The notes: generated from the letters alone by a model not told the origin. DNA of 64,000 nucleotides from Oopsacas minuta (GCA_024704765.1 JAKMXF010000221.1:496001-560000), one strand, 5' to 3'; shown: positions 7,664 to 27,643, numbered from the stretch's first letter. Translations and numbers: made by a program.

Positions 7664-9169
7664 TTAGTCCTCTGGTTGCTCGATCTTAGAGGGATAGAGT
7701 AGAGAAGTGAATATTAACAGAATTATATTGATGCTGGCGATTGTCCAAATAAAACTCGCATCCATCGGCCATTTAAATCCAGATGAAATGCTCCAAGCGT
7801 ATACATTAGCTCCGAATATAGGCCCGAAGAACCTGACTAGCGAGGCGCCCGACTGAGCAATCCCATTCACTGTGGCCCTCTGTTTGCGTTTCGATGAGTT
7901 CGCTACTCCCATTGCATAACAAGCGAATAGTAAGACCCGGAGAATAGAAATAGGCAATTGTAGTGAGAAGAATATTACCCATATTCTCAATGGAATATCA
8001 GCAATATCTAAACTAACTCCATGACAACTCATTTGGCTATTGGTATGCATACTTCCATTCACTGCAGTAGAGACAGGAACATACGTAGAGAATGCTTGTT
8101 TCACTAAACTAACTCTAGACCATAGAGGCAATAAGAAAATAAGTATCGCTGTTGGAATGAGGAATATTCTAAGACATTTCCTTATGCCAAGATAACCGAT
8201 TATGAGCGGACCGATCAGTAGGGCAAATGGAATTTGTATTAGAGAAGTACAGAAGGTGATAAAACCCAGTGAATCCTCGTTCATACAAAATCCTCCGTTC
8301 CTTGGGGGTGTGACAAGCATGAGAGGGATCAGTTCATCGAATTGGATCATTACAAAAGCATAGTAATTGTAGTTGAATATAGCGGATAAGATTACTCTAT
8401 GTGAAAATAGTTTGAGTGTATTCTTGAGGTATTTATGTGAGTTATTGTTTGACGTTTTGAAATCTTTCCGGGTTAGAAATTCGTCCGTCTCATCGCTCCC
8501 CTCTTCTCTCATTTCCAGGGGGGAGTATTTTGTGTCTCTGTCTCCTTTCTTGATAGATTCTTTCAGAAATACCGAGCTAATAATAATAGCTACTACTCCT
8601 AAACACACACAGACAGCGCTAGGTAGGAAGTAAGGGAAGCGACGGAGAAATGATCGATCTAAGAATTTGAATTTAGTAGCTGGTCGGCTAAGCCATGCGC
8701 TCAGAGTAGGGCCTATCATCCTGCCCAATCCGTCAGAGAGTCCGAGAAGAGACATCCCCCTCGCTAAATCCTGTCTATTTTCACAGACTTCTGCGATAAA
8801 AGTCTTCACAATTGCGTCTGTACCATTAAACAACCCCCAAAGGAATCTCAAAATTAGCGCCATCGTATACGAAGTACTCAAACCAAATAGCCCGATAGTT
8901 ATGCTGTACATAAATGTGGTTAGCATAACAGCTCGCTTCCTTCCTATCCAGTCCGATAATCGCCCCCAGATCCAAGAGCCACTAAATGTCCCCAGGAAAT
9001 AGATCCCTGCTAGATAACCTTGTCTATATCCCAACTCTGATTCTGAGAGTTCTGGGAAGAAATCGTGAGTGATGTCCGGTAGGATCGGGAAAATGTAGAG
9101 CATGCCGAATTGACTTACAATGAATATTGAAGTAATAACTATAAGCTGTATGGCAGTTTTAGCTAGCAT
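7664..9169 (-). CDS. Major facilitator superfamily transporter (ZIFL/MFSD-like), single coding exon
   Basis: 501-aa ORF, about 12 hydrophobic segments, MFS motif A (WGRLSDWIGRKR). A probable 5'-UTR intron (donor GTGAGT near 9287, acceptor near 9196) lies upstream. Confidence 0.88.
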   Translation of the reverse strand: MLAKTAIQLIVITSIFIVSQFGMLYIFPILPDITHDFFPELSESELGYRQGYLAGIYFLGTFSGSWIWGRLSDWIGRKRAVMLTTFMYSITIGLFGLSTSYTMALILRFLWGLFNGTDAIVKTFIAEVCENRQDLARGMSLLGLSDGLGRMIGPTLSAWLSRPATKFKFLDRSFLRRFPYFLPSAVCVCLGVVAIIISSVFLKESIKKGDRDTKYSPLEMREEGSDETDEFLTRKDFKTSNNNSHKYLKNTLKLFSHRVILSAIFNYNYYAFVMIQFDELIPLMLVTPPRNGGFCMNEDSLGFITFCTSLIQIPFALLIGPLIIGYLGIRKCLRIFLIPTAILIFLLPLWSRVSLVKQAFSTYVPVSTAVNGSMHTNSQMSCHGVSLDIADIPLRIWVIFFSLQLPISILRVLLFACYAMGVANSSKRKQRATVNGIAQSGASLVRFFGPIFGANVYAWSISSGFKWPMDASFIWTIASINIILLIFTSLLYPSKIEQPED

Positions 9170-9806
9170 TCTTGTTGCCTAGTGTTGTTGCCTAGGAGAG
9201 AAAGACAATAATAACTGAAGAAATTTGTCAAAACAAATAAATATAATGATTCATAGCTTTTATATTTGAGGTTACAACACTACTCACCCTTTAGTTCCAT
9301 ATTGCATGTGTGAGTCAATCCGTAAACGTAAATATAGTGAATCATCTTTCGGAATGAATGGAATGTTTGAATTGTGTAGCAGTATATAACAATCTTGTTG
9401 CTATACTTCTGGCTTCAGGACCATCCAGCTTTTGGACGTTTCGACAGGACAGTACGCTCAAGAAATATCCGAATAGCGGATCGTACCTCCCTCCAATACC
9501 ATAGATGCCAAACTAGTGCCTCGCCAAGCCGTGCGATTTCCTCTCAAAAGACGTGCGAGTTAGCATCTCTACAAAAACTTGAATTGACGAGCATTAATTT
9601 GCAAGATCTGTAACCCTGAGGGAATTTTAAAGGTCACCCTTGAAGTTCTCCAACACCTCAGAGATTATTAATCAAGTTCATACCTAATATGGTCAACGAA
9701 TAGGATTTGCGGTTTTCCTTATCGAATTAGTCACATCCAATTATTATTATTTATACTAACAAAACAGGAAAAATGCATTTTCACTTTTTCAATATTTAAC
9801 ATTCAA

Positions 9807-11454
9807 ATGCTTCGTATACGTATCTTCCTCGGTGGCTGTAGAGGACGAGAGATCTCTAAACTATGCGCGCTTGCAAGGGCCTGCTCCTCACCTAGACTAG
9901 TTTCTAATATTTCAAATACAAATGTAAATATCAAAGGTTCTGCAATCGAAACTGAGTATAAAATCGAGGAAGCAACTTTGGAGTGGTCCGCCCAAGCCCC
10001 TCCTTCCAAACCTAACCCCTTCCACCTGGACTTGTCTCCTAAAGACTGTCCCGTCTCCAGCTACAACGAGTGGGACCCGCTCAAGGAGGTTATCGTGGGA
10101 AGAGTAGAGGGCGCATGTGTTCCAGAATTTACTATCGAAGTGAAAGCTAACAGCTATGAGAAGAACTGGCCTTTCTTCAAGGAGTACGGGGGTAAGCCCT
10201 TCCCAAAGGAGTTTATGAAGAAAGGTAAAGAAGAGATCGAAGAGTTCTGCAGGGTGAGTTGATCTGTTCTTACAAACTGTTGTCACAAACAAATATAATT
10301 TGTGAAATGAATCGGTATTTAGGTACTGACAGCTGAGGGAGTTACTGTCAGACGCCCAGAGATTCTTGACTTTAGTGAAGTATACAAAACTCCTGACTTC
10401 TCTTCTCGTGGTCTCTACGCAGCAATGCCTAGAGACTACTTGCTGGTAGTAGGCAATCAGCTGATTGAAGCTCCTATGGCATGGAGGTCTAGATACATGG
10501 AGCACAGAGCTTACCGTCCTCTTATAAAGGAATATTTCCTCAAAGGTATAACTATCATTTCTCTTACAGGTGACATCCGATACCTCAGACATATTTGAGG
10601 GCTCAAGTTAGCAGATGTCAACCAGCATAGAGTATGGTGTAACCTCCACGAACCGGCGTCCCTTGGATCTCTTTCGTGTAGGTTACATTGTATTTATCTT
10701 AGAGATACATATGGTCTTTAGAAATTCTCTTATTTGTATTGTTCTAGGTGCTAAATGGTGTGCTGGACCTAAACCCCTGTTAAGCAATGAACTCTACGAC
10801 TATGACTATCCAATACAAAACGTAGCACAGAGACATGAGCTAGCATTCGAGGGGAAATTTGTGACGACAGAGTTCGAACCTACCTTTGACGCTGCAGACT
10901 TTATTCGCTGTGGGAGAGATATATTTGCCCAGAGAAGTCAGGTGACCAACTACTTCGGTATAGAATGGATGAGAAGACAACTAGGCAGTGATTATAATTT
11001 GCATATTCTCACTTTTAAAGACCCTAACCCAATGCATATCGACGCTACCTTCAATACGATAGCTCCAGGTATAATTTAATTATGTCAGGGTGTTAATATG
11101 TTAAAATTTATATTATTATATGTAGGAATAGTCCTGGCTAATCCTGACAGACCCTGTGGACAGATAGAGCTGTTTAAGAAGGCCGGATGGAAGGTAGTTC
11201 ATCCTCCTAAACCTGTTATATCAGATTCACATCCTCTATGGTTATCTTCTAAATGGTTGAGTATGAATGTACTGATGTTATCTCCTACACGTGTTGTAGT
11301 GGAAAAAGACGAGATTCCTATTCAAAAGATGTTTGAGAGCCTAGGCATTGAATGTATTAAAGTTAACATACGTCATGCGAACTCATTCGGAGGAGGATTC
11401 CATTGCTGGACTACTGATGTACGTAGAGAAGGGACTCTACAGTCTTATCTCTGA
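9807..11454 (+). CDS. GATM: Glycine amidinotransferase (creatine synthesis), mitochondrial precursor
   Basis: Exons 9807-10253, 10323-10545, 10748-11068, 11126-11454 in phase; [44 protein letters not shown] (catalytic Asp/His/Cys); Arg-rich N-terminal presequence. Confidence 0.93.
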
Positions 11455-11914
11455 TATGGACATACTATCTATTCGTTTATCTTATTCAGTCCAGTCCTTA
11501 CTTAGTTCACTCTTCGTCTCAGTCCTTACCACTTACATCACTCTTCCTAATACTCTCTTTATTCTATTATTTCTTTTACATTATCTCTATCTACCTTAGT
11601 TACCTCCTCGATTAAATCTCAGCTTCTCGATACTTTTGTAATTCAGTACAGTAGACTAGACCTCTCAAAACTGACAACAACCTCGAAGTGTCCGTTATTC
11701 GGAGGTTCCTCTCTAAATTGGTGGTTAGTAAGACTGCCTAGATCTCCGGCAGAGCACATCCAGCTCTGCTCTTCATGACAACCATTATGTCTCTTAGTTA
11801 TTCATAAGGGTAAACGTAATAGTGATTTGATAAAAATCGCGTATATTAACAATTACAAAACAGTTTAATACACAACTAAAATCACACACACTGAGCTTAT
11901 CTAGAGAAGTTCTA

Positions 11915-14900
11915 TCATGAAATGTGTGAGAATTTCATATTTTTCGGTATAATATATTGATTATAACTGCCAATGAATAGTCGTCTCACTTCCAAGAGTT
12001 TGTCTCTCCGTATTTTAACCAATTCTGGACATTTATCTGACTTCTGGAGACCGCAATGTATAGAGAATTCACTATCAGTCATATGTTCTAGATAATCCAT
12101 ACCAAAATAGAAAATCTCCTCAGATTTCGAATTCCTATCGCTCAGTTTGTGTCCGAATAGCCTCCAATCGTATGCTACTGTGAAGAATAACATCTCTAGT
12201 GGGTTTAGGCTAGCATGCGCAAGACCGTCTGCCCATAGACTTAATCTTAACAAGGATATGAACATAGGTGTTCTGTCCCATCCAGAAATACAGTGTACGA
12301 ATACTCCCCCGTTAGAATTCTCCAGTTGGTATAAGAGCAGTCTTGTATAACAGCTAGTCATGTCTTTTATACTCCATTCTTTGTATTCTGCCCAATTGAC
12401 CCCCAGGGGTTTGTGTACCACCCCATCTGGGATCTTTAGGATAGCGTCCACCTTTTCTACTTTCCAATTGAATCTCAGTTTATCTGAGTTAAGATATTTG
12501 CTTTGATAACCGCGGAAGGATTCACAACCTGGATACGGCAAACTGGCTAATAGGAATTCTCGATACCTATAGTAAATATTTGAAATATTTTACAATAATT
12601 AAGTTTAACTCTTAAACAAACCTTCCAGCTTTATCGACCTTCTCTGAAGAAGCTACTGGTAACATAAACTTGAGTTTTTTCTGTTGATACATCAGGTCAC
12701 ATATCAATCGTACTCTAAGCTCTTTCAGAAGTTTTATGTCTTGTCCTCTGACCTTATCACATAGCTCTTCCTGTCTTCCTAGTCGGCTCTTGTCGGGGAG
12801 ATTAGTCGCACCGTCTTCTTCAACCCCAACACCTCCTGTCGAGAAAAAGTCCCAGCCTCTCCGTCCGAACTGTTCCACTCCCACGGATAGTGTAGCTCCC
12901 CTGCAAAGGTTCTTGTCTTTATAGATTAGGACAGGTACCGCGAATCTGCTACGTGCCCTGGCGAACCTTGCGGTCAGGAATAGCTGAGTCAATTTTATAG
13001 CATTATTAACCTTCTGCTACAAAGTATACAATATATTAGATTAGATTCGGTAACCTACACAAATGAGGTGCCAGAGACGCCGCCAAATATGATACTCCGT
13101 ATGTGGAGGCTCATTTGTATGGGACTAGGATCGCTCTGTTTATTTTTCACTCCGTTCCCACAGCCCTGTATTAATCTGTAAGTATAGATTGTGTAGCATG
13201 TCACAGCAAAGTACTAGGGTATCTCGAGCTAGTCAGGCCTCTGTACGCAGCGTGGGGTCTAGACACAGCTACAAGACTGTATCACATCATAGCGCAGTTG
13301 ATGAATCCTTATTCGGTGAGTCGTTCAGAGAAAAGAAGATGAGAGAGAACAGAGAGAGCAAATCTCTTAGTCCTGTTCAGCCTTATCACCCCGTACTACA
13401 CTCACCGGACCCTCTGGCATTCTCTGAGGCTCGACAGAAGCCAGAAGTTGTGCAGGTATTTGCCGGACATATTCCCGTGGTTTCCTGTATATTTACTTAA
13501 TTGTTTAGGTGATAACTAAAGACCTGATTCGTAAAATCCGCATACCAAGACCTGAGGATCCATCCGGACAGACTATAATCCTTGGACAAGATCACCTGAA
13601 TAGGATCGTTAGTGAATCAGCTGTTGTAACCAAAGACGATCTCCAACTGGAGAAAGAGAGACAGGAGGACAATAGGAACCAACTCCAAGATCAGGTGCAG
13701 AAGAGAAAGAAGGAATTTCAGGTATGCAGATTTATTTAAACACTCAACTCCCCGCTTATATTGAAGTGTGAATTGTACAAATATGGTCACAAACAGTTAA
13801 ACGGATTATAAAAATTGTATGATATTTGTAGGCTATTGAGCTAGCTCGTCGAACAAACGAGAAATCAGATCTCGACAAGGAATCTGAAGATACTCGTGAT
13901 ATTCTAATACAGAGATCAAAGAATATGATGGAAGAGCAGGACGATGAGATTAAAAAACTGAATGAGGTTATCCTGAATGCGAAATGTCATGCGATAAGAG
14001 ATGCTCAGTTAACTGAGAAAGACATTCTTAAACTGGATATAGACCATGAGGAGAAGCGACTAGACAATATGATGGAAATGGACAGACTCAATGCTATGCA
14101 GGAATATGAGCGTAGAGAACAAGAGAGACATAGACAGAGACTGCTGGGAGCCCAGGTAATAACCCTATACAGGGCTATGCTTTATACAAATACTCTGAGA
14201 ATATAGCTTAATATTAATACACTGGATTCCGGTTATAAGAACGTGTATTGCTACTCCCGAGGGTGTTTTTATAACTGACATCCACTGCATATAGATATTT
14301 AACCATGGGAATAGGTTATCCAGCAACAGATAAAGGACAGAGAACAAGACCGTCTGCTCGAGTCAGAGAAAAAAGACCAAGAAACAAGGACTATGCTTGA
14401 GTATCTAGAGCGTCTACAGATTGAGGACATAAAAGAGATGGAAGAGAAAGTTACCCGACAGAATATCCTAATGGAAGATATCAACCTAGCTAATGACGAG
14501 ATTCAAAGACAGAAATTACTGCAAAAAGAACAGGAAAAATTAGCCGAATTGAAGGTAGAGTATAATTACAGCTTAATGTTATTCAAGGCATTGTATATTA
14601 CAATTCAAATTGAATCACGATAATAATATATGTTAATTAGTAATCTCTTTGTACCCAACAGCCGTGTGTCATACCGATACCATATAAATCTTTGACATAT
14701 TGCCAACGACGACTATTCTCCTTCCATAAACCAAATCCGATTTTCTGGAGACGAAAATTAAACCAGGCTAATATGAAATCGGCGGGTAGTCCCTCTCCCT
14801 TTCTGGTCGGTTTCCAGTTGCTAGGGAATACCTTTATTAGGTCCCATTCCTGTCGAGTGAGCCGAGGACGTCTCATTTTCTGGACCTTTGAACTTTGAGA

Positions 14901-17900: not shown

Positions 17901-18659
17901 TTAGAACTTTAAGGGAATACCGAAAAATTGAAGATGGATTGGTGACCGACACAATGAGTTTTCTATTCTGTCACTGTGCCACAATATGCCACATTTTATC
18001 ACTTAGATTTATGGGTCATAGAATAGAATATTCTGGGAATAATGCAGATTGAAATGTCACTCAAAATATATATAAAAAAAGATTCAACAAACCTCACACT
18101 CATTTTTTGGTTTTCCATTTTGTTGATTCTCATATTTGCTATTCTCAATGAAAGCATAACTCTTGTAATCTTCTAAGTCACCATGTCCACTTACATCCAG
18201 ACTTCTTGTACAATCCGTATCCCCCATGGCCTCTACATGTACCCATCCTAAAAGTTGTCGTGATACAGTGGTCTCCTCACACATGCAGTCAGCTGATCTG
18301 TCGAGAACACTCTCACTCTTCCTTCTATGATCCAGTGAAGGGTCGAACTCGCAAAATTTCCCCTCTGGTTTAGCAACCTTTAATTTCTCTCGTTCAGGAA
18401 TCAAGAGGGTAGGAGGGTAGTGAGCACATAGAGACCCATCTTGGTTTTGTACCTGTCCAATTTCATAGTCCTGTTTGAACAGGAACCAACACTTCTCCAA
18501 GTACTGAAGAGAACTACGATCCTCTGGCTTGTAAGGAGTTGTTAGAAAATTATTGATAAGTTCATCTAGTATATCTTTATTTATTTCCCCTTTATTTGAA
18601 TCTGAAAGTAGTACGCACTTCCTTTCCACACCCAATTTAGATTTGATTATACTCGCCAT
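11915..18659 (-). CDS. MTMR14: Myotubularin-related protein 14 (PI3P phosphatase); intron 1 (13017-18092, 5076 nt) hosts CFAP45
   Basis: Exons 18659-18093, 13016-12622, 12566-11915 join in phase (537 aa). Exon 1 has FKQDYEIGQVQNQDGSLCAHYP; exon 2 FARARSRFAVPVLIYKDKNLCRGATL; exon 3 LPYPGCE and catalytic CX5R VHCISGWDRT. Confidence 0.88.
13198..17793 (+). CDS. CFAP45: Cilia- and flagella-associated protein 45 (CCDC19), nested antisense in MTMR14 intron 1
   Basis: Exons 13198-13455, 13509-13721, 13832-14155, 14315-14554, 16969-17382, 17563-17793, all phase 0 (559 aa). Trichoplein-type coiled coil; SAVDESLFG, EQDDEIKKLNEVILNAKCHAIRDAQ, KLQELKDAGIPTKY motifs. Confidence 0.88.
14217..14290. mobile_element. 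Mini Tc1/mariner-like MITE, family C (second copy about 48383-48470, inverted)
   Basis: TACACTGGATTCCGGTTATAAGAAC ... TTTTTATAACTGACATCCACTGCA; internal GTATTGCTACTCCC also found as reverse complement at about 48415. Confidence 0.65.
14637..15359 (-). CDS. Orphan 240-aa ORF inside CFAP45 intron 4 (14555-16968)
   Basis: Uninterrupted 723-nt ORF in AT-rich intron, in-frame stop 33 nt upstream of the ATG; S/R-rich N-terminus, acidic TTDSESDEE, basic KMRRPR, Trp-rich C-terminus. No family recognised. Confidence 0.55.
   Translation of the reverse strand: MMTATCNMFSFSRVLNSPPKGRKDPSYQKVPKLGQVTESHMSRGSRVHSTSRRSCYPAEDIQQRAAEYMVSNNFMYVPKDEEFDSTLTDNGEGGKKHLLEESAFEIKTALKRLYARGRSMGLQEQEMYKYILRNAFECTTDSESDEEVIYSPTSQSSKVQKMRRPRLTRQEWDLIKVFPSNWKPTRKGEGLPADFILAWFNFRLQKIGFGLWKENSRRWQYVKDLYGIGMTHGCWVQRDY
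17394..17544. mobile_element. MITE family B in the last CFAP45 intron
   Basis: CAGTGGCACCTCC ... GGCGGAGGTTACACTG ends; internal GGAACTTCTGGAAACTGAGTGAAAA shared with copies or fragments at about 5240-5300, 10646-10690, 13140-13160, 29040, 33435, 49650, 50538-50657, 60935-61052. Confidence 0.7.
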
Positions 18660-19516
18660 CCTGTTTGTTTGTTTGTTTGTTTATTTTCTCAGAGAATAGT
18701 ATATTAATAGATACAAACAAGATAGTCACTAATGAGAACCTAATCTGTCCTGGAAGAAACCTAAGTGTGGTTAGTTAATTGAAACTGCAAAAGTTAGATT
18801 TCTAGGATTCACTTGATTCGATTATAATACAAAATTTGGTATATTTATGTAATCTGGAGTTTAGTTACCAGGGCCTCTGGTTGGAGCTGTTTTGCTCTCA
18901 AGGGTGTTGTGTACACCCAGAAATTTTCAGTCTATTGTAATCTCGCATTTATCGATATTCTTAACTTTCAAATACCATCGTGGACGTTCAATGCATTTAC
19001 CCTTTAGAGATAATATTGAGAGTATCAAATATCTCTTAATTATCCCCTACGTATTGAAAAGCTAACTCCTGGAATTTTCAATTAATTACTACTACTTGAG
19101 TATATCTTACGAATCAATATATTATTTAATTTGAGGATCCTTGGTTACCCTAGGGGGCAGAAAATGGGTCTACACGTATGTATAATGATAGTCATATGTG
19201 TTCGGACAAATGCTAAAACTGCAAAACACATGCTACAACTGTTAAAATGATACCACAATCCTCAAATCTGTCACATAGCAACCGTACTCACCAATAGCTA
19301 TTTACCCTTAGCCAAAGTTGTTCTACTTGTCAGGTCATTAATCCTTAAGTTCCAAATACTCGTATGTGAGAGCCAGTAATGTTACAGTTCTATTAATAGG
19401 AATTACAGATTACATAACGTTTAATTAATTCCGTAAGTTGTTGAGACAATTTCCACTTATTTATATTGAAAGGGAACATTTTAGATTATCTTTCCTAAGC
19501 TGTAATGTAATCTCTA

Positions 19517-22500
19517 ATGGCTACTAACACTTCGAACACTCCTGCTATTTGCGTCATAACAGCTCGCATTAAGCAGACACGAAATAGAGCTATCAAAAGT
19601 TTCCATTCTTTCGATAAAACAGATTATTCCAGTCTGGAGAGAGAACTGATTTCTTGTTTGAGAACGAATTATGACGTCACTCATTTTTCTGATACGGACA
19701 CTACAGACTGGCCGCTATCCAATTCCCCCTCATTCCCCGCACGGATGTTCGCGAGGGGACATGTTCCGATCACAAACTCAAAATCGGTTGACTTTCTATC
19801 AAACACTTTCTCGTTTGGAAAAGATCTTGATATACTTCAGCAGTTTATGAGAGACAACTCACATATAGAGAGATATATCATCAACATATTTGCAAAAGTA
19901 TGGATATTATTAAACTCCGCGTTATAACGAAGTGATTCTTTCCCCCTATTTCTTGAAAGTAATTGAATATACTCCGCGTTATATCGAAGTGAAACCCGAT
20001 GTCCCGATCACTTCGTTATAACAAGAGTTTATTTACATTCCCGTATTTTATATGTGTCATCCTTTTAGGACGCTACACAGATCAAATCGGACTATATGAC
20101 AAAGTTTTTCAACATGGTATCCTCCAGTAAGAGTGTCGTGTTCTATTTCTGTCGGAAAGCAACCCGTAAAATGTTCCAGAAGGAGTACTGGACTTCTCTA
20201 TGCGGTCTCCTTCAATTTTCAATTCGTAAATATATCTTAGATTTTAAAGAGAAACACCCAATCTTAGATACGAACAAATTGACCAATCATATTAATTCTT
20301 ATCTCAAAGGTTAGTTACATATTAATATTTGAGTTCCCTTATTAATAGGTGTTAGTTCCAATTCATGTGTATATTTATCTCCCAGCACTCGGCCTTTGAT
20401 ACCTAGTTACCTTTGGACAACAGTGTGGGGTACATACATATGTAATCTAATTATAATTGCCTCTGTAATTACTAAATCTATCTTTAGAAATAATTATCTT
20501 ATAATATATAACGATAAGATGTTTAACTAATATTAGCTGTTTTGTCAAACTATCAGTGATCGATGATGGATCAGAATGGCGATCAATTCAGTCATCAGGA
20601 CTCTATTCGTGAGAACGGGGTGGAGGATATGATGGTAGAGACGCGGCGTCGTGTGAAGCTGTTTGTTCTTAATGAAGCTCACGATTGGGAAGATAAAGGA
20701 ACTGGACATGTGACTGTGGTTTTCCAAGAATACCTACATGGTCTAGCGTTAGTTGTCCGTAGCGAGGACAACGGAGCTGTCCTCCTAGAGTCTCGGATTG
20801 AATCGGACAGGGTCTACCAAAAACAGGACGCGACATTGATAGTATGGGACGAGAATGAGATTGAGAAGGCTCTCTCCTTCCAGGAGCGACAGGGCTGTGA
20901 TGACGTTTGGTCCAAAATAAGAGAGGTTCAGGGCCGTAACGAACTCGGAGAGATCTCAGATAACCTGACTCACATGGAAGGATTTGAAGATGACCAAATA
21001 TTCCAAAATTCGCAGGAAATATACGCGATTGAAATGCCAGTTGTAAACACAGAGAATTTACCGAATATCTATGAGTTACTAACCAAATATACTAACCCAG
21101 TCGTTGATAAGGATAATGTAGTAGCTGCTATAGAGAATGAAGATTACGTCAGAAAGCTTCTGGAGTTTTTCCAGATCTGTGAGAGGGATAAAGACACGGA
21201 AAACCTCCAAACTCTATATCGGATCTTTAAGAATCTCTTCTTAATGAATCGTACTGCTATTCTACAGATCATGCTCAGTGAGACGAATATCATTGACGTC
21301 ATAGGGTGTCTAGAATACGACCCTAGGGTCACTACCCCCTCCACACATCGGGAATTCATTCGTAAGCAAGCTAGCTTTAAGGACGTTATCCCTATCACAA
21401 ACACTGAGCTATTAACAAAGATCCATTTGATGTATAAAATGCAATATATACAAGACGCGATACTGCCTGCTCCCTCTATGTTTGAGGAGAATTTGATGAA
21501 TGCATTAGCTCAGTATATTCTATTCCAGAAGATTGAGATAATAGAAATGATTGAGAAGGAGGAAACGTTCCTGATGGATCTTTTTGGAGGGATTGAAGAG
21601 GAAAATAGAGAGGGGATCACACCCGATAAATTTAAGAACCTAGTCTTCCTCTTGAAGGAGATTTGCCTGTTTTCACAGGCCGCGCAGAATCCTGCCTCTA
21701 AGCACAATTTCTCTCTGATACTCTGGAATAATGGAATGATGAAGTCTCTCGGAATTATCCTAAGCTCAGATGATGACGTCATTCTACAGAGTGGTGTAGA
21801 TATCCTATTGACCATGACTGAATTTGCTGGTACCAGTATTCAGCTTAAAATTACGACAGAAGCGGAGACTCAGGAGGAAGACGAGCAAATTATAAATCTA
21901 CTAATTAACACACTTGTCGATCCTCATAAGTCATCATTAGACGCCTCCACTTTCCATTTATTGAGGACTCTAATCGACCCGGAGACTTTTATACCTGACA
22001 TGAAGCCAGTTGACCGAACAACATTCTTATCGTACTTCTATAAGAACTGTATGCACCATCTGATCGCTCCACTCCTCGCGGTAACTACTGACACACGAAT
22101 ACACCATTTATTAGACACAGTAGATAACACGGAGATACTAGCTAACATTATTCAACTGCTGGCGTTCTGTGTAGAACAACACACATACCATAGTCGTGTA
22201 TATATAATAAATAAGAACCTCCTGTCTCGTGTAGTCGTCCTATTGACTTCTAAACACTCCCATCTAGTCCTCATGACAATACGACTTGTCAGAAAGATAC
22301 TAGGCATGAAGGAGGAAGGTTTGAACTCTTATATCATTAAGAATAACCTGCTACAACCACTGACGTCACTATTAATAGCAACACCTAAGTATAATATGAT
22401 TAATTCAGCCTGTCTTGAGTTGTTCAGTTTTATTTTGAAAGAGAAAACCAGAGGCCTTCTAAAGTACCTGATTGAAACGCTCCCAGAGGTGAAGGAGATC

Positions 22501-25500
22501 AGATATGTGGAGTTGTTTACTAAAATGCAAATAGAATATGATCATATGAAAGAAACAGAGATCAATCCTAGTAGAGAGTTAGAAGGATTGATGAGCATGC
22601 AATGGTCCGCCAAGGAGCGGGACGAGCAGAGGAGAGAGGAGAGAGACGAAGAAGCCTGGTTTGATAGAGATGATGACGTATACGCGATTAATTCAAGTTC
22701 CCCGGGGGAAGACGCTACCCCAATGAGTACAGAACCCCATCCTGCTATAACCGCTAGTCCAATCAAGGACTCCTCTCCCGACTCTCCTACCCCTCCGTCC
22801 AGCAGCGTGTCAGTCCGTACTCCTACTCGTCTCGTCGAGTACGAACCGGACAGCGATGAAGACACCGATCCAGAGGAAGTATTAGACCCGTTCCCAGTCC
22901 CTACTACCTCTCAACCAAACATTCCAACACCTGATCCCCTTCACCCCTCCTCTACCCCAGAAGATAAAATCAAACCTCTCTCAAACCCTCCAGACATCGA
23001 ATTAATCTCTCCAGCCAAGCGCCCTCGTATCACGTAGCAATCTGCAATCACTGTTTAACCAATAGGCGAACGCTACTTGTGCATATTTGGATTGCCGTTA
23101 TGTAGAATTATACACTATTCAAGCAAATGTATTGTTATTCAATAGAGGGAGGATAGGTGTTGAATATTTGTTGTTAATATGATTAGTTAAATTTGTATTT
23201 CCTCCAGCTCGATATCTACAAAGTGATGATAACTATGTGCAGTGGACATCACAGCTTCGAGTCCTGACCTTCATTAAGCCAAAGGGTGAGAAAGTACTAG
23301 GGATAAGGTTCAGACAGGTGAACATTAAAGTGAGTTATCCATGGTCCTTTATTATTATAATGGAACCTCATTAATATGAACACCAACAGGCTATCGATGC
23401 GGCTCTCTCGAAAGATTCACCTAGCACTGTCCCCATAATAACAGAGATTATTCCAGACACTCCAGCAGCTCATTGTCCCTGCTTATGGATTAATGATCAT
23501 CTCCTTTGTATTAAAGGCTATATCTATACTGATACACAGTATGAAGCTAGACAGCTAGAGGGAGTAATAGCTAAGTGTACGTATGTACAGATTGTTGTGC
23601 AGAGAGCTGTACGTATATACGGACCGGAGAAGATAGCGTTTATTGCTGGGAAGAGGCAGAAGTTTGGGATTACATTCATGGAGAAGAAAAATGTAAATTA
23701 ATTATCCAACACCGTTATACTTTATGGATGGTGAAGTTATCTGCTCAGTGTTGTTCTAGGTCATTTTGAGGTACTCCTCGCTTGTTTGGAGGGATTTCTA
23801 TATGACAAAATAAATGACATCCCCATCCATGGTTAAATATCTAATAAGCGTATAGGGAACCATTTTCGTCAACACGCGTATATTAATAAACATTTTGTAT
23901 AGTTATATCAAGGCAAACTATCCACAATGATATCTGGATTCTCCTCGAGAGCTGAGACAGAATATTTAGAGAAAGGATTAGAGCTTAAGAGTATCATCCT
24001 CTCTATAAATGATAGGACATTGTCAGATCTCCCTCTATCTGAGGCAATACCTATTCTAATGCAAGAATCATTCCTGCAGGACAATATAAAGATAAGATTC
24101 ACTACTTTACAGAAATTTTGTGACAGTATTAAGAAAGATCCAGATATTAATCTAGCCCTCGTGAACCAACCGGGACCCATACCTAAACTTGTTCTAAAGG
24201 AGTCGCCCTCTCTCCCAATCATAGGAGCAGGGAGGATAGATGATCCCCTGAGGTCTGTGTTCTCACACGATGCTCAACACTACAATTATCTAAAGGTTGT
24301 ATAACAATGAATACATCTTACCCAATTTTATTTAAATCATCCAATAGGTATACATTCTTGGTGTTAAACTCTTCGAAGATGTTTACGAGTTGGTTGGGCG
24401 TTTGTTACACGAGAGTACACGTCCCCGTGTCTCGCCCCTAGAGGACACATGCTTCGAGAGACCCAATTTCTCTCCAGACCTCTATCCAAACTGTTCCCTA
24501 GTTGATCAGCTGTTCCGGGCCGCCTCGGCAGACGAGCGAGTCATCACGGAATTGGATCTGGACTCAGAATGGCGGCCAGTATGTTACACCCCCGTACTCT
24601 CCAACCTGTCCTACCCAGCTGATCTCTCCGTCAGGTCTCCTGTACACAAAATGAGTCCATTACACCATAAGCTAGATGTTATAGGCCCTAGCACTCCTCT
24701 AGGAGATACAGGATATGGACTGAAGAGACCCTCCTCTATCTCTCTGATTACCCCTTCCTCTTCCTCCTCAAGTATCAGTTCTGAGCAGTCTCCGGACCTT
24801 ATGGTCCGGTGTGACATGTCCTCTCCTATACCAACAGCTGCTATCACCCTTGTACTCCTGAGGAACACCCGTGAGTTGTCCTCCCTATCCCCACCGGACA
24901 TATTTCCCCTATTCAAGCGGTCAGGTCTTTACGTAATGGTTATTAATCTTGAGAGAATATTCTCATTCTTTGAAAGTGAGATTCATTTCTATCTCAAAGT
25001 CTTAACTGAACTTCACTCGCTTCCTTTTCAGGAACCAGTGAAAGTATTTATAGTAGGTCTATATGACAGTCTGTTGGAAACGACTGTACGAGCGCTCTGC
25101 TGGTCGCTACACGGATTGTTTGAGTCGCTATTTAATTCACATGTGATACTGGACAGTAAGAAGTTTGAGACATGTGTGTTCCCCATCCGTCGTAGCGACA
25201 GGAATATGGACACCGTACACGTGCTTAGACAGACCCTTCTGGCCTTCTCTAGAGGGACATATCCGGACCATGGTGTCTGTGAAGAGGACTCTACCGGATT
25301 ACTAAGGATACCGGATAACTTCAATAGGTTCAGAGTATGTAGTCTCCTACAATCCACTGTACCAGTTCTGTTGTCAGAGTACATCGGCCAGATTCTTGTT
25401 GAGACAGAGTTACCAGAGCATCATCTGGAGATAGCACTGAGTGCTCTCGTAGAGTGTACACCATTCCTAGCGCCAGGTGAGTTGTCAAGCAATGATTTTG

Positions 25501-27273
25501 TCTAGTACAGTCAACTCCTGTTATAACGAAACTCAAGGGGGGCCTTGATAATTACTTAAATATAAGCGAGTTTTTCTATTTCTATAAACGTGAGTCGAGT
25601 GTACGTATCTCTTTAAATATTTTCTAGATAATTTATCCGACTTAAATGAGGAAGGGATATTACTCCGTCCGGGGATATTCCTGCGTATTCTTAAACAGCT
25701 GGAGAAATGGTCAGGAGGAGATGGACTAGACAGATACCCAGAACAGAGGGAGATATGCAAACAGCTTCGATCATCATGCTACTTCAATCCTACCGTGTTA
25801 ATACATGCTATTATGCAGAGCTGTTACAAGTAAGAAATAGACACCCAAAATTTGGTTCAAGTTCTTCCAATTATCCAATCTTTAGATTAAGTCAGATAGC
25901 AAGAGCTCTGCTACGCTGGATGGAGAAACTTGACTATATTCATATAATAGGTGGTCCGATCTCTACCGCAGAATTCGAGAAATATTCAATGAACAAGTCT
26001 ATGACGCCTAAACCTGGTCCTAAGAACATCAAAGTGTTTATGCCTAGCATTGCCTTATGGAACGGTTAGTTTTAATAGCTAATTTGTGTTCTATTTGTGA
26101 CGTCATGAAATGTTTAGATTATAAGAAGCTTGACACTTCGACGGTATTCTGTGACGCACATGTGTTCTATCTGGACGTGTCAGACCCTATTTCATCGCGG
26201 TTCTATTTCCTGTTCCTCTCCGAGCTGCTGCGAGCTGTCCATCAGTCTAACATGACATCATTATCCCCGACACGAAGAGAGATAGGCATACTCCCCCTCT
26301 ATGATTTCCAGCTGTTTAAAGGTGCTAGCATAGCTAGGCTGTTTGATCAGGAGCTGTTAGGATGTAATCTGGAGATTATTAATCATCACGATCAATTCCA
26401 GATTGAGTTCAGAGCAAAGTAGGTTATTTCTTATAAATTTCTGACCCTTGATTATTAACCATTTGAACCCTGTTTCCTTGTTTCTGGAGGTTTATTTATT
26501 TGGGAATAAGAATTCGCTCTAAGTTCTTCGTTTCCACAGGCCCCGTTTGTGGATGTCACACTGTATAGACTTTAAAAATACCTGACTTATTAAATATATC
26601 CCCAGGTTTGGGTCGACTCCCTCCCAAGCTCTCCCCAATCTACTAAGGCAGATCTACTCTTGTGGAGGTAAAGCTCTCAACAAAATGAATCTCACTGACA
26701 AAGGGTTTAACATAGCTATAGGACCAGCTTGTCCTGTGGAAGGGTGTCCTGGAAAGAAAAAGACATCTGGTCTGTCTAAAGCTACTGTTAGTTTTGTACA
26801 AGTTATACAGAGTAATCATCCTACTCGATACCAAGGTAATTCCAAGCTAATTTAGCCCAGTTTGATTGAGGAACTGGTAAGAGCTATAAACTTAAAACTT
26901 GGCACGTGTGTGGAATGTAATTAATCAAGTAACATGTCCTAATATCTAAGCGATATCTCAAAAACTCTCTGAGATAGGTGTCAAAATGTCTTAACCTATC
27001 AGATTTGAGGATTATCCAGCATGTGATTCTATTGGTTAATTATATTAATTATCTCTAGGTATAAGCCCCTGTGAAATGAGAGGGCCTCTCCCTTGTTGGG
27101 GACGTCCAGGGGTACACGTTATTGACCTTTCAGTCAACTTCCGACACCCAACCAAAATAGTGTCACATTACTCACAGTGCCAGGACCAAATTATAACACC
27201 TGACAGTCCTATTGTTTGTTGTCAGCAACATTCCTCCCTCCGTGACTGGGCTCCCCATGATCCTCCTATTTAA
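19517..27273 (+). CDS. Uncharacterised 1226-aa protein: N-terminal region, two PDZ-like domains, degenerate Roc/COR-like region; intron 2 (20310-23207) hosts PP4R3
   Basis: Exons 19517-19897, 20069-20309, 23208-23329, 23390-23692, 23903-24295, 24348-25476, 25699-26064, 26118-26418, 26606-26835, 27059-27273 give one open frame with all phases matching. PDZ-like: KPKGEKVLGIRF...IITEIIPDTPAAHCPCLWINDHLLCIKG and KRQKFGITF...MISGFSSRAETEYLEKGLELKSIILSINDR. Roc-like strands KVYILG, GLYVMVINL, VKVFIVGLYD. Domain calls are by eye. Confidence 0.68.
19911..20030. mobile_element. Tc1/mariner-like MITE remnant (family D) in intron 1 of the PDZ gene
   Basis: TAAACTCCGCGTTATAACGAAGTGA repeated twice and inverted CACTTCGTTATAACAAGAGTTTA. 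Confidence 0.6.
20563..23037 (+). CDS. PPP4R3: Protein phosphatase 4 regulatory subunit 3 (SMEK), intronless CDS, nested on the same strand
   Basis: 824-aa ORF; EVH1-like [78 protein letters not shown]; acidic Pro-rich tail ending in NLS-like PAKRPR. Confidence 0.93.
   Translation: [824 protein letters not shown]
25506..25603. mobile_element. MITE family A, internally deleted copy
   Basis: TACAGTCAACTCCTGTTATAACGAA left end; degenerate right end GAGTCGAGTGTA; in intron 25477-25698. Confidence 0.6.
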
Positions 27274-27643
27274 CCGCCTTTTCCCCCTCTTTGTGTCACT
27301 TTTCTATCAAGCCACACCTCACTTTATTCAATTATCTTATTAATTAAATCATTGAATAATTTGTAAATGAGATATGTATGAAAGTTTGTATTTATTGTTT
27401 GTTTTGTATAATTTGTATTTATTTGCTAATATAGTATATTTATTGTTTCTTCTTAAAATATGTATATACGTCACTTCCACGGTTGTCACCTTATAGAAGC
27501 CGGGGGAGCAATTTGTAGAACACTGACGGACGCGTATAACGACAACAATAGGCAGTTGGAATGTGAAAAATTCTGCCCTCTCTCTCACCCATTTTGATAC
27601 CTTAGATCTCTTATAAACTGAATTATAACATAATTATAGGACA

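Follow-up and report, generated by a model that had tools for sequence, protein, structure and literature searches.

A PP4R3 gene in the glass sponge Oopsacas minuta lies between a short upstream coding region and a set of PDZ-encoding exons, all on the same strand. The locus thus raises the question of whether the flanking exons form one gene that is spliced across PP4R3, or belong to separate genes standing in tandem. The window analysed was a stretch of 64,000 nucleotides (GCA_024704765.1, JAKMXF010000221.1:496001-560000), and positions are counted from its first letter. Reading frames, splice sites and their conservation make it very likely that PP4R3 is a same-strand guest within a 2.9-kb intron of a glass-sponge-specific PDZ-domain gene. 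The host would be a single gene of 11 exons covering ~7.8 kb (19517-27273, plus strand). Its product of about 1230 aa would open with an N-terminal region of ~208 aa, followed by two PDZ-like units and a long, uncharacterised C-terminal stretch. Cis-splicing from 20309 to 23208 would yield the host mRNA, PP4R3 leaving with intron 2, and PP4R3 would have an mRNA of its own, separate from the host. The predicted parts of the locus are as follows (a slash in a motif marks the splice boundary).

19517-19897, plus strand: host exon 1 (U1), 127 codons starting with ATG, donor AAAA/GTATGG, phase 0
20069-20309, plus strand: host exon 2 (U2), 80 codons + 1 nt, acceptor ttttag/GAC, donor AAAG/GTTAGT, ending in phase 1
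20310-23207, plus strand: host intron 2 as predicted, 2898 nt, phase 1, containing the entire PP4R3 gene
20563-23037, plus strand: guest gene PP4R3/SMEK, intronless, complete ORF of 824 aa
23208-23329, plus strand: host exon 3 (D1), starting in phase 1, without ATG, start of PDZ1 (VLGIRF)
23390-23692, plus strand: host exon 4 (D2), remainder of PDZ1, then the start of the second PDZ-like unit
23903-24295, plus strand: host exon 5 (D3), part of the frame chain
24348-25476, plus strand: host exon 6 (D4), 376 aa, glass-sponge-specific, with a beta-alpha-beta pattern
25628-25829, plus strand: host exon 7, part of the open-frame chain
25886 or 25892-26064, plus strand: host exon 8, part of the open-frame chain
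26118-26418, plus strand: host exon 9, part of the open-frame chain
26606-26835, plus strand: host exon 10, part of the open-frame chain
27059-27273, plus strand: host exon 11, ending the open-frame chain with TAA

Judged by its Pfam match, its orthologous ORFs and its single copy, the guest is an intact gene. The initial annotation had placed a complete, intronless PP4R3 within the host intron, and domain searches bore this out: PF04802 was matched at 3.4e-129 over profile positions 1-496 of 497, together with EVH1_PP4R3. In the protein, PF22972 (1.9e-13) falls at residues 28-123 and PF04802 at residues 168-660. The layout is that of the family, with an N-terminal EVH1-like (RanBD-like) domain followed by an armadillo-type domain. 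Orthologues are 73-74% identical with uninterrupted ORFs of 820-827 aa, whilst identity to annotated animal PP4R3 proteins is 38-43%. A search of the genome gave a single PP4R3 match, the only copy.

Both splice sites flanking the guest can be read directly in the sequence as they had been reported, with donor AAAG/GTTAGT at 20309/20310, acceptor CCTCCAG/CT at 23207/23208 and matched phase 1. On the upstream side, ORF 20096-20314 ends ...TAT CTC AAA G/GTTAGT, its last exon base at 20309 in phase 1, and reading on past the donor gives GGT TAG (TAG 20312-20314). That this ORF runs into the donor was thus correctly noted, but the exon does not start at ATG 20096. Its acceptor is ttttag/GAC at 20068/20069, its join to exon 19517-19897 is in phase 0, and relatives have V or L at the position of the internal ATG. 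On the downstream side the acceptor reads tcctccag/CTCGATAT, the first exon base being 23208 in phase 1. The U2-D1 junction itself is predicted from sequence. When the exon chain was joined in scripts, the open frame ran unbroken from ATG 19517 to TAA 27273. The continuity of the 1226-aa frame first proposed therefore holds; its length depends on three ambiguous internal boundaries and comes to 1224-1232 aa, most likely 1229-1231. The D3 boundary is supported by a distant relative (P0122), in which the ...HYNYLK/V... junction is contiguous. By itself, a phase match has one-in-three odds, and this counts against the nest.

D1 encodes the first part of a PDZ domain but lacks a start codon; it therefore requires a coding exon upstream. 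The frame ahead of 23208 contains the stop that had been noted there (TGA 23180-23182, 28 nt upstream). This frame holds no ATG from that TGA to the exon, and the six loci tested all have a stop in frame 16-28 nt ahead of D1. The claim that no ATG-bearing in-phase exon exists between PP4R3 and D1 is nearly right; there is one formal exception, a 7-nt candidate at ATG 23127 with its weak donor at 23134. A second ATG-led candidate in the 23038-23207 spacer would require too short an intron (22 nt), and neither mini-exon is conserved. The possibility that D1 is a first exon joined to a leader and carrying its own AUG was rejected: D1 has no in-frame ATG, and its out-of-frame ATGs reach stops. Likewise rejected was a fusion of U2 to the PP4R3 acceptor by splicing, which is out of frame and runs into a TGA.

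The PDZ assignment of the host, made in the initial annotation, was confirmed with a D2 profile of 7 orthologues. This gave 50 PDB matches, all PDZ domains (best E 1.4e-4), among them GRIP, InaD, GOPC and DLG4. The alignment begins at chain residue ~30, indicating that strands beta1-2 of the PDZ domain come from D1, which must therefore be translated; the GLGF-type loop of PDZ1, VLGIRF, is encoded by D1. Pfam searches of the host exons one by one returned no family; the PDZ domain escaped them because it is interrupted by an intron.

Five other glass-sponge assemblies yielded seven related loci, all with the order U1-U2-PP4R3-D1...D9-NHL gene, and in O. minuta and all seven loci the PP4R3 coding region lies between consecutive host splice sites on the same strand. 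Contigs L006 and L009, genomic sequence of a distant relative, were too short for linkage. With the order, both splice sites and both phases were retained at 7/7 loci despite saturated silent sites. Such retention of splice sites and phase alongside saturated synonymous sites is more than chance. The donor is AAAG/GTT(A/T)GT at all loci and the acceptor is YAG/C(T/G) CGN TAY; the conserved YAG/C(T/G) makes the codon divided by the intron G+CT or G+CG at every locus, encoding Ala. Intron 2 measures 3155-3942 nt in relatives.

The host exons on both sides of the guest are also constrained. Across the seven related loci U1 shows 65-72% amino-acid identity with its start ATG kept, and U2 shows 61-76% with acceptor and donor kept in all loci. 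For U2, pN is 0.14-0.17 vs a pS of 0.74-0.84, a pattern indicating that the upstream exons are coding and under purifying selection. D1 is 77-95% identical in the related loci, D1 and D2 have pN of 0.04-0.15 with saturated pS, and exons 7-11 are each 67-78% identical in L010. No paralogues of U1, D4 or PP4R3 were found in the O. minuta genome. Searches of protein collections for spliced, transcript-derived proteins across the junction gave only genomic ORF calls. The interpretation given in the initial annotation is partly supported, with comparative evidence behind its core, that one host gene is spliced across a same-strand PP4R3.

For the ends of the PP4R3 transcript, and its use of an own promoter or the host transcript, we infer the likely arrangement from four features within the intron.

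20381-20437, plus strand: conserved non-coding block upstream of PP4R3, found by alignment
20533-20539, plus strand: acceptor-like motif TTAG/CTG, 26 nt before the PP4R3 ATG
23079-23112, plus strand: ~34-nt conserved block TGCATATTTGGATTGCCGTTATGTAGAATTAT, 42-75 nt after the PP4R3 stop
23157-23207, plus strand: GU-rich tract (GGTGTTG...TTGTTGTT) and polypyrimidine/AG acceptor, together the 51-nt GT-AG segment

It is possible, though we think it improbable, that the nest is real and PP4R3 has no promoter of its own. The guest would then be cut operon-style from the host transcript, by spliced-leader trans-splicing at TTAG/CTG, with cleavage and polyadenylation ahead of the host acceptor. Any one primary transcript would become either a host mRNA or a PP4R3 mRNA. 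This corresponds to the coupling proposed in the initial annotation and concerns mechanism only. Glass sponges are known to trans-splice (PMC10282587), and every locus has an acceptor-like motif 3-26 nt ahead of the PP4R3 start codon, in keeping with such processing. In all relatives this is ATTAG/CTG, 3-8 nt ahead of the ATG, and in O. minuta a second acceptor-like motif, ctatcag/, ends at 20556. By analogy with published glass-sponge trans-splicing (PMC10282587), TTAG/CTG is a candidate spliced-leader acceptor, and in the favoured reading as well, the 5' end of PP4R3 is probably formed there by spliced-leader addition.

The spacing upstream of the guest bears on the promoter in two ways. From host donor to PP4R3 ATG there are only 253 nt in O. 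minuta, which favours a shared transcript, but in relatives this part of the intron measures 480-1250 nt and includes a conserved stretch of ~57 nt, a possible promoter. We regard block 20381-20437 as a candidate PP4R3 promoter, 5' element or small RNA on the basis of its alignment. RNAalifold gave 16 pairs for the block, 4 of them compensatory. Its hairpin has an MFE of -28.5 (z -5.5) in L010 and -20.7 (z -3.2) in L003, and is weak in O. minuta (-10.3, z +1.2). The block is single copy in the genome, which rules it out as an SL RNA gene. A search of 19000-27600 against Rfam, including both conserved non-coding blocks, gave no match. A further point against a promoterless guest is that placing a housekeeping regulator under the promoter of a lineage-specific gene has no obvious design.

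At the 3' side, the reported absence of AATAAA and ATTAAA from 23038-23207 was confirmed, AATAGA alone being present. The 51-nt segment is likewise as described, with GT at 23157 and AG at 23206-07 as its ends. Within the 34-nt block 24/34 columns are invariant among 7 loci despite saturated pS; it is AU-rich, includes UGUA and is genome-unique, and folding of it gave nothing significant. Its position and conservation make it a probable element of the PP4R3 3'UTR or poly(A) region. Tracts of the TGTTGTTGTT type precede the acceptor in all loci, AG/GTGTTG being retained in 4-5/7, and the GU-rich tract may serve as a poly(A) downstream element. An AU-rich block with UGUA and a GU-rich tract would offset the missing AATAAA, and the whole looks like an ordinary PP4R3 3'-end region. 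The PP4R3 3' end would probably fall 40-170 nt past the stop, at these two features and inside the host intron. A conserved 3' block and GU-rich tract within the intron would also suit a shared transcript. The suggested coupling of the two outputs, through splicing versus choice of 3' end, could be proposed for any same-strand nest.

That the locus instead holds three tandem genes, as the public annotation has it, is unlikely. The first would be a 208-aa protein from U1-U2 (...SYLKG-stop, TAG 20312-20314), the second PP4R3 and the third a self-starting PDZ gene. To start itself, the last would need a short unconserved exon in 23038-23207, a non-AUG codon or a leader-supplied AUG at 23208. In its favour, the GenBank model LOD99_2792 ('hypothetical protein') is exactly the 208-aa product of U1+U2, ending at the TAG inside the donor, and every locus has a stop 1-4 codons past the donor. 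The position of that stop is not conserved (L001 and L002 read GGT TTG TTC TAA), whereas the donor GT and its GTTNGT consensus are. ATG-led phase-1 mini-exons can be drawn in the spacers of O. minuta, L001/L002 and L003, and L003 has an in-frame ATG 14 nt ahead of the acceptor, making an own PDZ start conceivable in some relatives. However, no alternative start is conserved in position or phase, and the sole O. minuta candidate would contribute just 7 coding nt ahead of a weak GTTATT donor. Further, the first in-frame Met of a separate PDZ gene falls after PDZ1, which is itself strongly constrained.

The GenBank split also has a ready explanation. Nested genes and a trans-spliced leader have been published for glass sponges (Francis et al. 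2023, Aphrocallistes vastus genome, PMC10282587), with 83 nested genes in the O. minuta annotation vs 2432 in the curated A. vastus annotation. That study attributed low nest counts in some genomes to a setting of the annotation program, so a forced split of the host is to be expected here. Under the nested reading, LOD99_2792 very probably represents the 5' portion of the PDZ gene that follows, whose second intron contains PP4R3, and the nest implies a merge of the two GenBank gene models. It also supports the published view that the count of 83 is a method artefact (PMC10282587).

We find it hard to credit that the 34-nt block and GU-rich tract act as a conserved switch between termination at PP4R3 and read-on to host splicing, although a true switch would tie the output of a lineage-specific PDZ scaffold to that of the phosphatase-4 regulator through one primary transcript, the guest being freed by spliced-leader addition.

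As in the nests of the A. vastus paper, a complete single-exon gene sits in a host intron, the genome is a compact hexactinellid one, different glass sponges share the layout, and the host is of the kind that automatic annotation tends to break. The PP4R3-in-PDZ pair is absent from that paper, which gives no breakdown of same-strand vs antisense nests (PMC10282587). With glass-sponge nests already published (PMC10282587), the greater rarity of same-strand than of antisense nesting, put forward in the initial annotation, lends this one no special status. What is new is the correction to the gene model and, within the host intron, a pair of conserved non-coding elements; nesting itself is known in glass sponges. 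The locus adds one more conserved same-strand nest and leaves the general picture unchanged. The two intron elements offer handles on how a same-strand guest starts and terminates in a trans-splicing animal.

Other systems share parts of this arrangement. Spliced-leader operons of nematodes, tunicates and chaetognaths also have same-strand genes about 170-250 nt apart, with an acceptor just ahead of the downstream coding region that is preceded by the 3'-end signals of the upstream gene. By contrast, the downstream 'cistron' here, D1, has no start codon and carries on the upstream frame, which argues for an intron with a guest and not a simple tandem operon. In the competition of intronic polyadenylation with splicing (U1 telescripting, IPA isoforms), polymerase similarly passes a same-strand intronic poly(A) region and the transcript is still spliced; here, however, the putative poly(A) region belongs to a full independent gene.

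Two further observations concern the host. Exon D4 falls in only 2 clusters among 1.84 billion representatives. The 'Roc-like' part of the name first given to the host would call for a Roc G domain with a P-loop and a COR domain beside it, and is tentative. Pfam gave no match at E up to 5, the D4 profile had none in the PDB, the D4 translation has no GxxxxGK[ST] motif, and the AF2 model of D4 (pLDDT 36.5) was too poor for a fold search. Language-model leads for D4 were sub-threshold (Gtr1/RagA 0.79, CENP-M 0.77; Atlas leads all below 0.9). Upstream of the host, a divergent ORF on the minus strand (18659-18084) lies 857 nt from U1, which leaves space for a natural promoter region.

The ORF at 20563-23037 encodes a full PP4R3/SMEK protein, in agreement with the initial annotation, matching PF04802 across the whole profile (3.4e-129) and containing an EVH1-like domain. 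A genome search found PP4R3 to be single copy, the window's assembly comprising 61,460,524 bases in 365 contigs. The Oopsacas minuta genome has been published (PMC10280926; tabulated in PMC10282587). Orthologues with 73-74% identity were recovered from ENA assemblies by protein search, and the contigs of PP4R3 orthologues supplied the loci compared here: L001 and L002 (one assembly), L003, L004, L005 and the more distant L010. L001-L005 and L010 all kept the order of two upstream exons (U1, 19517-19897; U2, 20069-20309), PP4R3, the PDZ-gene exons D1 to D9 and an NHL-repeat gene. L010 is the full-length relative furthest from the window, and its PP4R3 frame (9148-11590) breaks near codon 281-304 into two ORFs that overlap; a frameshift, a small intron or an assembly error could account for this.

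Script checks of the window sequence confirmed the phase-1 donor AAAG/GTTAGT (last exon base 20309), the phase-1 acceptor tcctccag/CT (first exon base 23208), the in-frame TGA upstream of the latter exon (23180-23182) and a 51-nt GT-AG segment with its GT at 23157. The ORF read from an ATG at 20096 does end at the donor, but its exon does not start there: it opens at the acceptor ttttag/GAC (20068/20069), which is conserved and joins U1 in phase 0, and relatives have Val or Leu in place of the Met at 20096. The claim that the spacer holds no ATG-bearing in-phase exon stood apart from one formal 7-nt ATG mini-exon, which has a weak GTTATT donor and is unconserved. The resulting 11-exon frame stays open between 19517 and its TAA at 27273 and encodes 1224-1232 aa across three ambiguous boundaries. 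The D3/D4 boundary was fixed because the junction is contiguous in a distant relative. In that relative (run SRR2064712, L009 1085/1086, ...HYNYLK-VF...) the intron at window 24295/24348 is missing, so an intron has been gained or lost among glass sponges.

Synonymous sites are saturated between the relatives and the window (pS 0.67-1.0), whilst non-synonymous differences are only 0.14-0.17 for U2 and 0.04-0.15 for D1 and D2. This marks the upstream exons as coding sequence under constraint. The donor AAAG/GTT(A/T)GT and the acceptor YAG/C(T/G)-CGN-TAY fall at identical codon positions in every locus, and the split codon is always G+CT or G+CG (Ala). The read-through stop varies, being GGT TAG in five loci and GGT TTG TTC TAA in L001 and L002.

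D1 (23208-23329) has no ATG and is preceded by an in-frame stop 16-28 nt upstream in 6/6 loci tested. The D2 profile matched only PDZ domains among solved structures (50 matches, best E 1.4e-4), upholding the PDZ naming of the gene. These alignments start at about residue 30 of the matched domains, so D1 encodes the first PDZ strands together with the VLGIRF loop and must be translated. In the downstream exons, an in-frame Met first occurs after the PDZ domain. U2 is the only conserved coding same-strand upstream exon with a phase-1 end, and splicing it to the acceptor that precedes PP4R3 is ruled out as out of frame, meeting a TGA. For these reasons it is likely, judging from sequence, that U1, U2 and the PDZ exons form one gene with PP4R3 in its second intron.

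The public annotation instead separates U1-U2 from the PDZ gene. GenBank models U1+U2 as a 208-aa 'hypothetical protein LOD99_2792 [Oopsacas minuta]' ending at the TAG within the donor, and protein collections hold genomic ORF calls alone for the host gene, the spliced product not being found there. Separate genes would also fit an in-frame ATG 14 nt before the acceptor in L003 and ATG-led phase-1 mini-exons in the L001, L002 and L003 spacers. However, the position and frame of these ATGs and mini-exons vary from species to species, and they are thus read as chance. The split itself is what would be expected from an annotation run that disallowed nests: 83 nests are listed for O. minuta versus 2432 in the curated annotation of A. 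vastus, an annotation-program setting is given as the cause of such low counts in some genomes, and an A. vastus nested gene wrongly fused or split in O. minuta is shown (PMC10282587).

In published work, nested genes characterise glass-sponge genomes (PMC10282587), and the PP4R3 nest is one more member of this known kind. The locus contributes a corrected gene model along with two conserved elements in the intron. The findings require no new mechanism; the proposed coupling of host and PP4R3 outputs is possible.

Host protein searches were made on single exons. The Roc-like assignment found no match in Pfam with any host exon (E up to 5) or in a PDB profile search with the 376-aa exon D4 (24348-25476). 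Leads for D4 (Gtr1/RagA, CENP-M) were all sub-threshold, and its AF2 model was unusable (pLDDT 36.5). Among 1.84 billion representatives its relatives fell in two clusters only, both from glass-sponge-like assemblies, hence the host is lineage-specific or fast-evolving.

Spacers after PP4R3 were unalignable except for a ~34-nt non-coding block and GU-rich tracts of the TGTTGTTGTT type directly before the host acceptor. The block (23079-23112, TGCATATTTGGATTGCCGTTATGTAGAATTAT; L001 ~12531-12565 in alignment A1) lies 42-75 nt past the PP4R3 stop and is near-invariant against saturated silent sites, with 24 columns invariant across seven loci. It is AU-rich and includes UGUA as well as a start-stop ATGTAG; a genome search found it nowhere else, and it gave no Rfam family match and no significant or stable fold. 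Block and tract probably form the PP4R3 3'-end processing region inside the host intron. AATAAA and ATTAAA are indeed absent from 23038-23207, as noted initially; with the block and tract read as a 3'-end region, this is explained without anything unusual.

PP4R3 would be transcribed from its own promoter, or else released out of the host primary transcript. An acceptor-like ATTAG/CTG, 3-26 nt before the PP4R3 ATG, is conserved in all loci and fits a candidate spliced-leader acceptor, such acceptors having been reported for glass sponges (PMC10282587). Upstream of PP4R3, the host intron also contains a conserved ~57-nt element:

20381-20437, in the window
8321-8379, in L010
9768-9826, in L003
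9625-9683, in L005

In relatives its fold is a strong hairpin supported by 4 compensatory pairs, reaching -28.5 kcal/mol (z -5.5) in L010, but the O. minuta sequence is degenerate (z +1.2). The element is single copy. Possible roles are a palindrome within a promoter or the precursor of a small RNA.

In one related assembly, a second, partial copy (L001 2631-6038) comprises U1, U2 and the first ~137 PP4R3 codons, with the intact locus lying ~5.9 kb further downstream. The adjoining ORF, on the minus strand, encodes a Pif1 2B domain; Helitron-type capture or segmental duplication may be the origin.

A 191-aa ORF (18084-18659, minus strand) is divergent from host exon 1 (19517, plus strand), and the 857 nt between them would leave room for the host promoter. 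This arrangement points to a bidirectional promoter region common to both. A neighbouring initial note assigns this place to MTMR14, and the minus-strand ORF may be the first exon of that gene.
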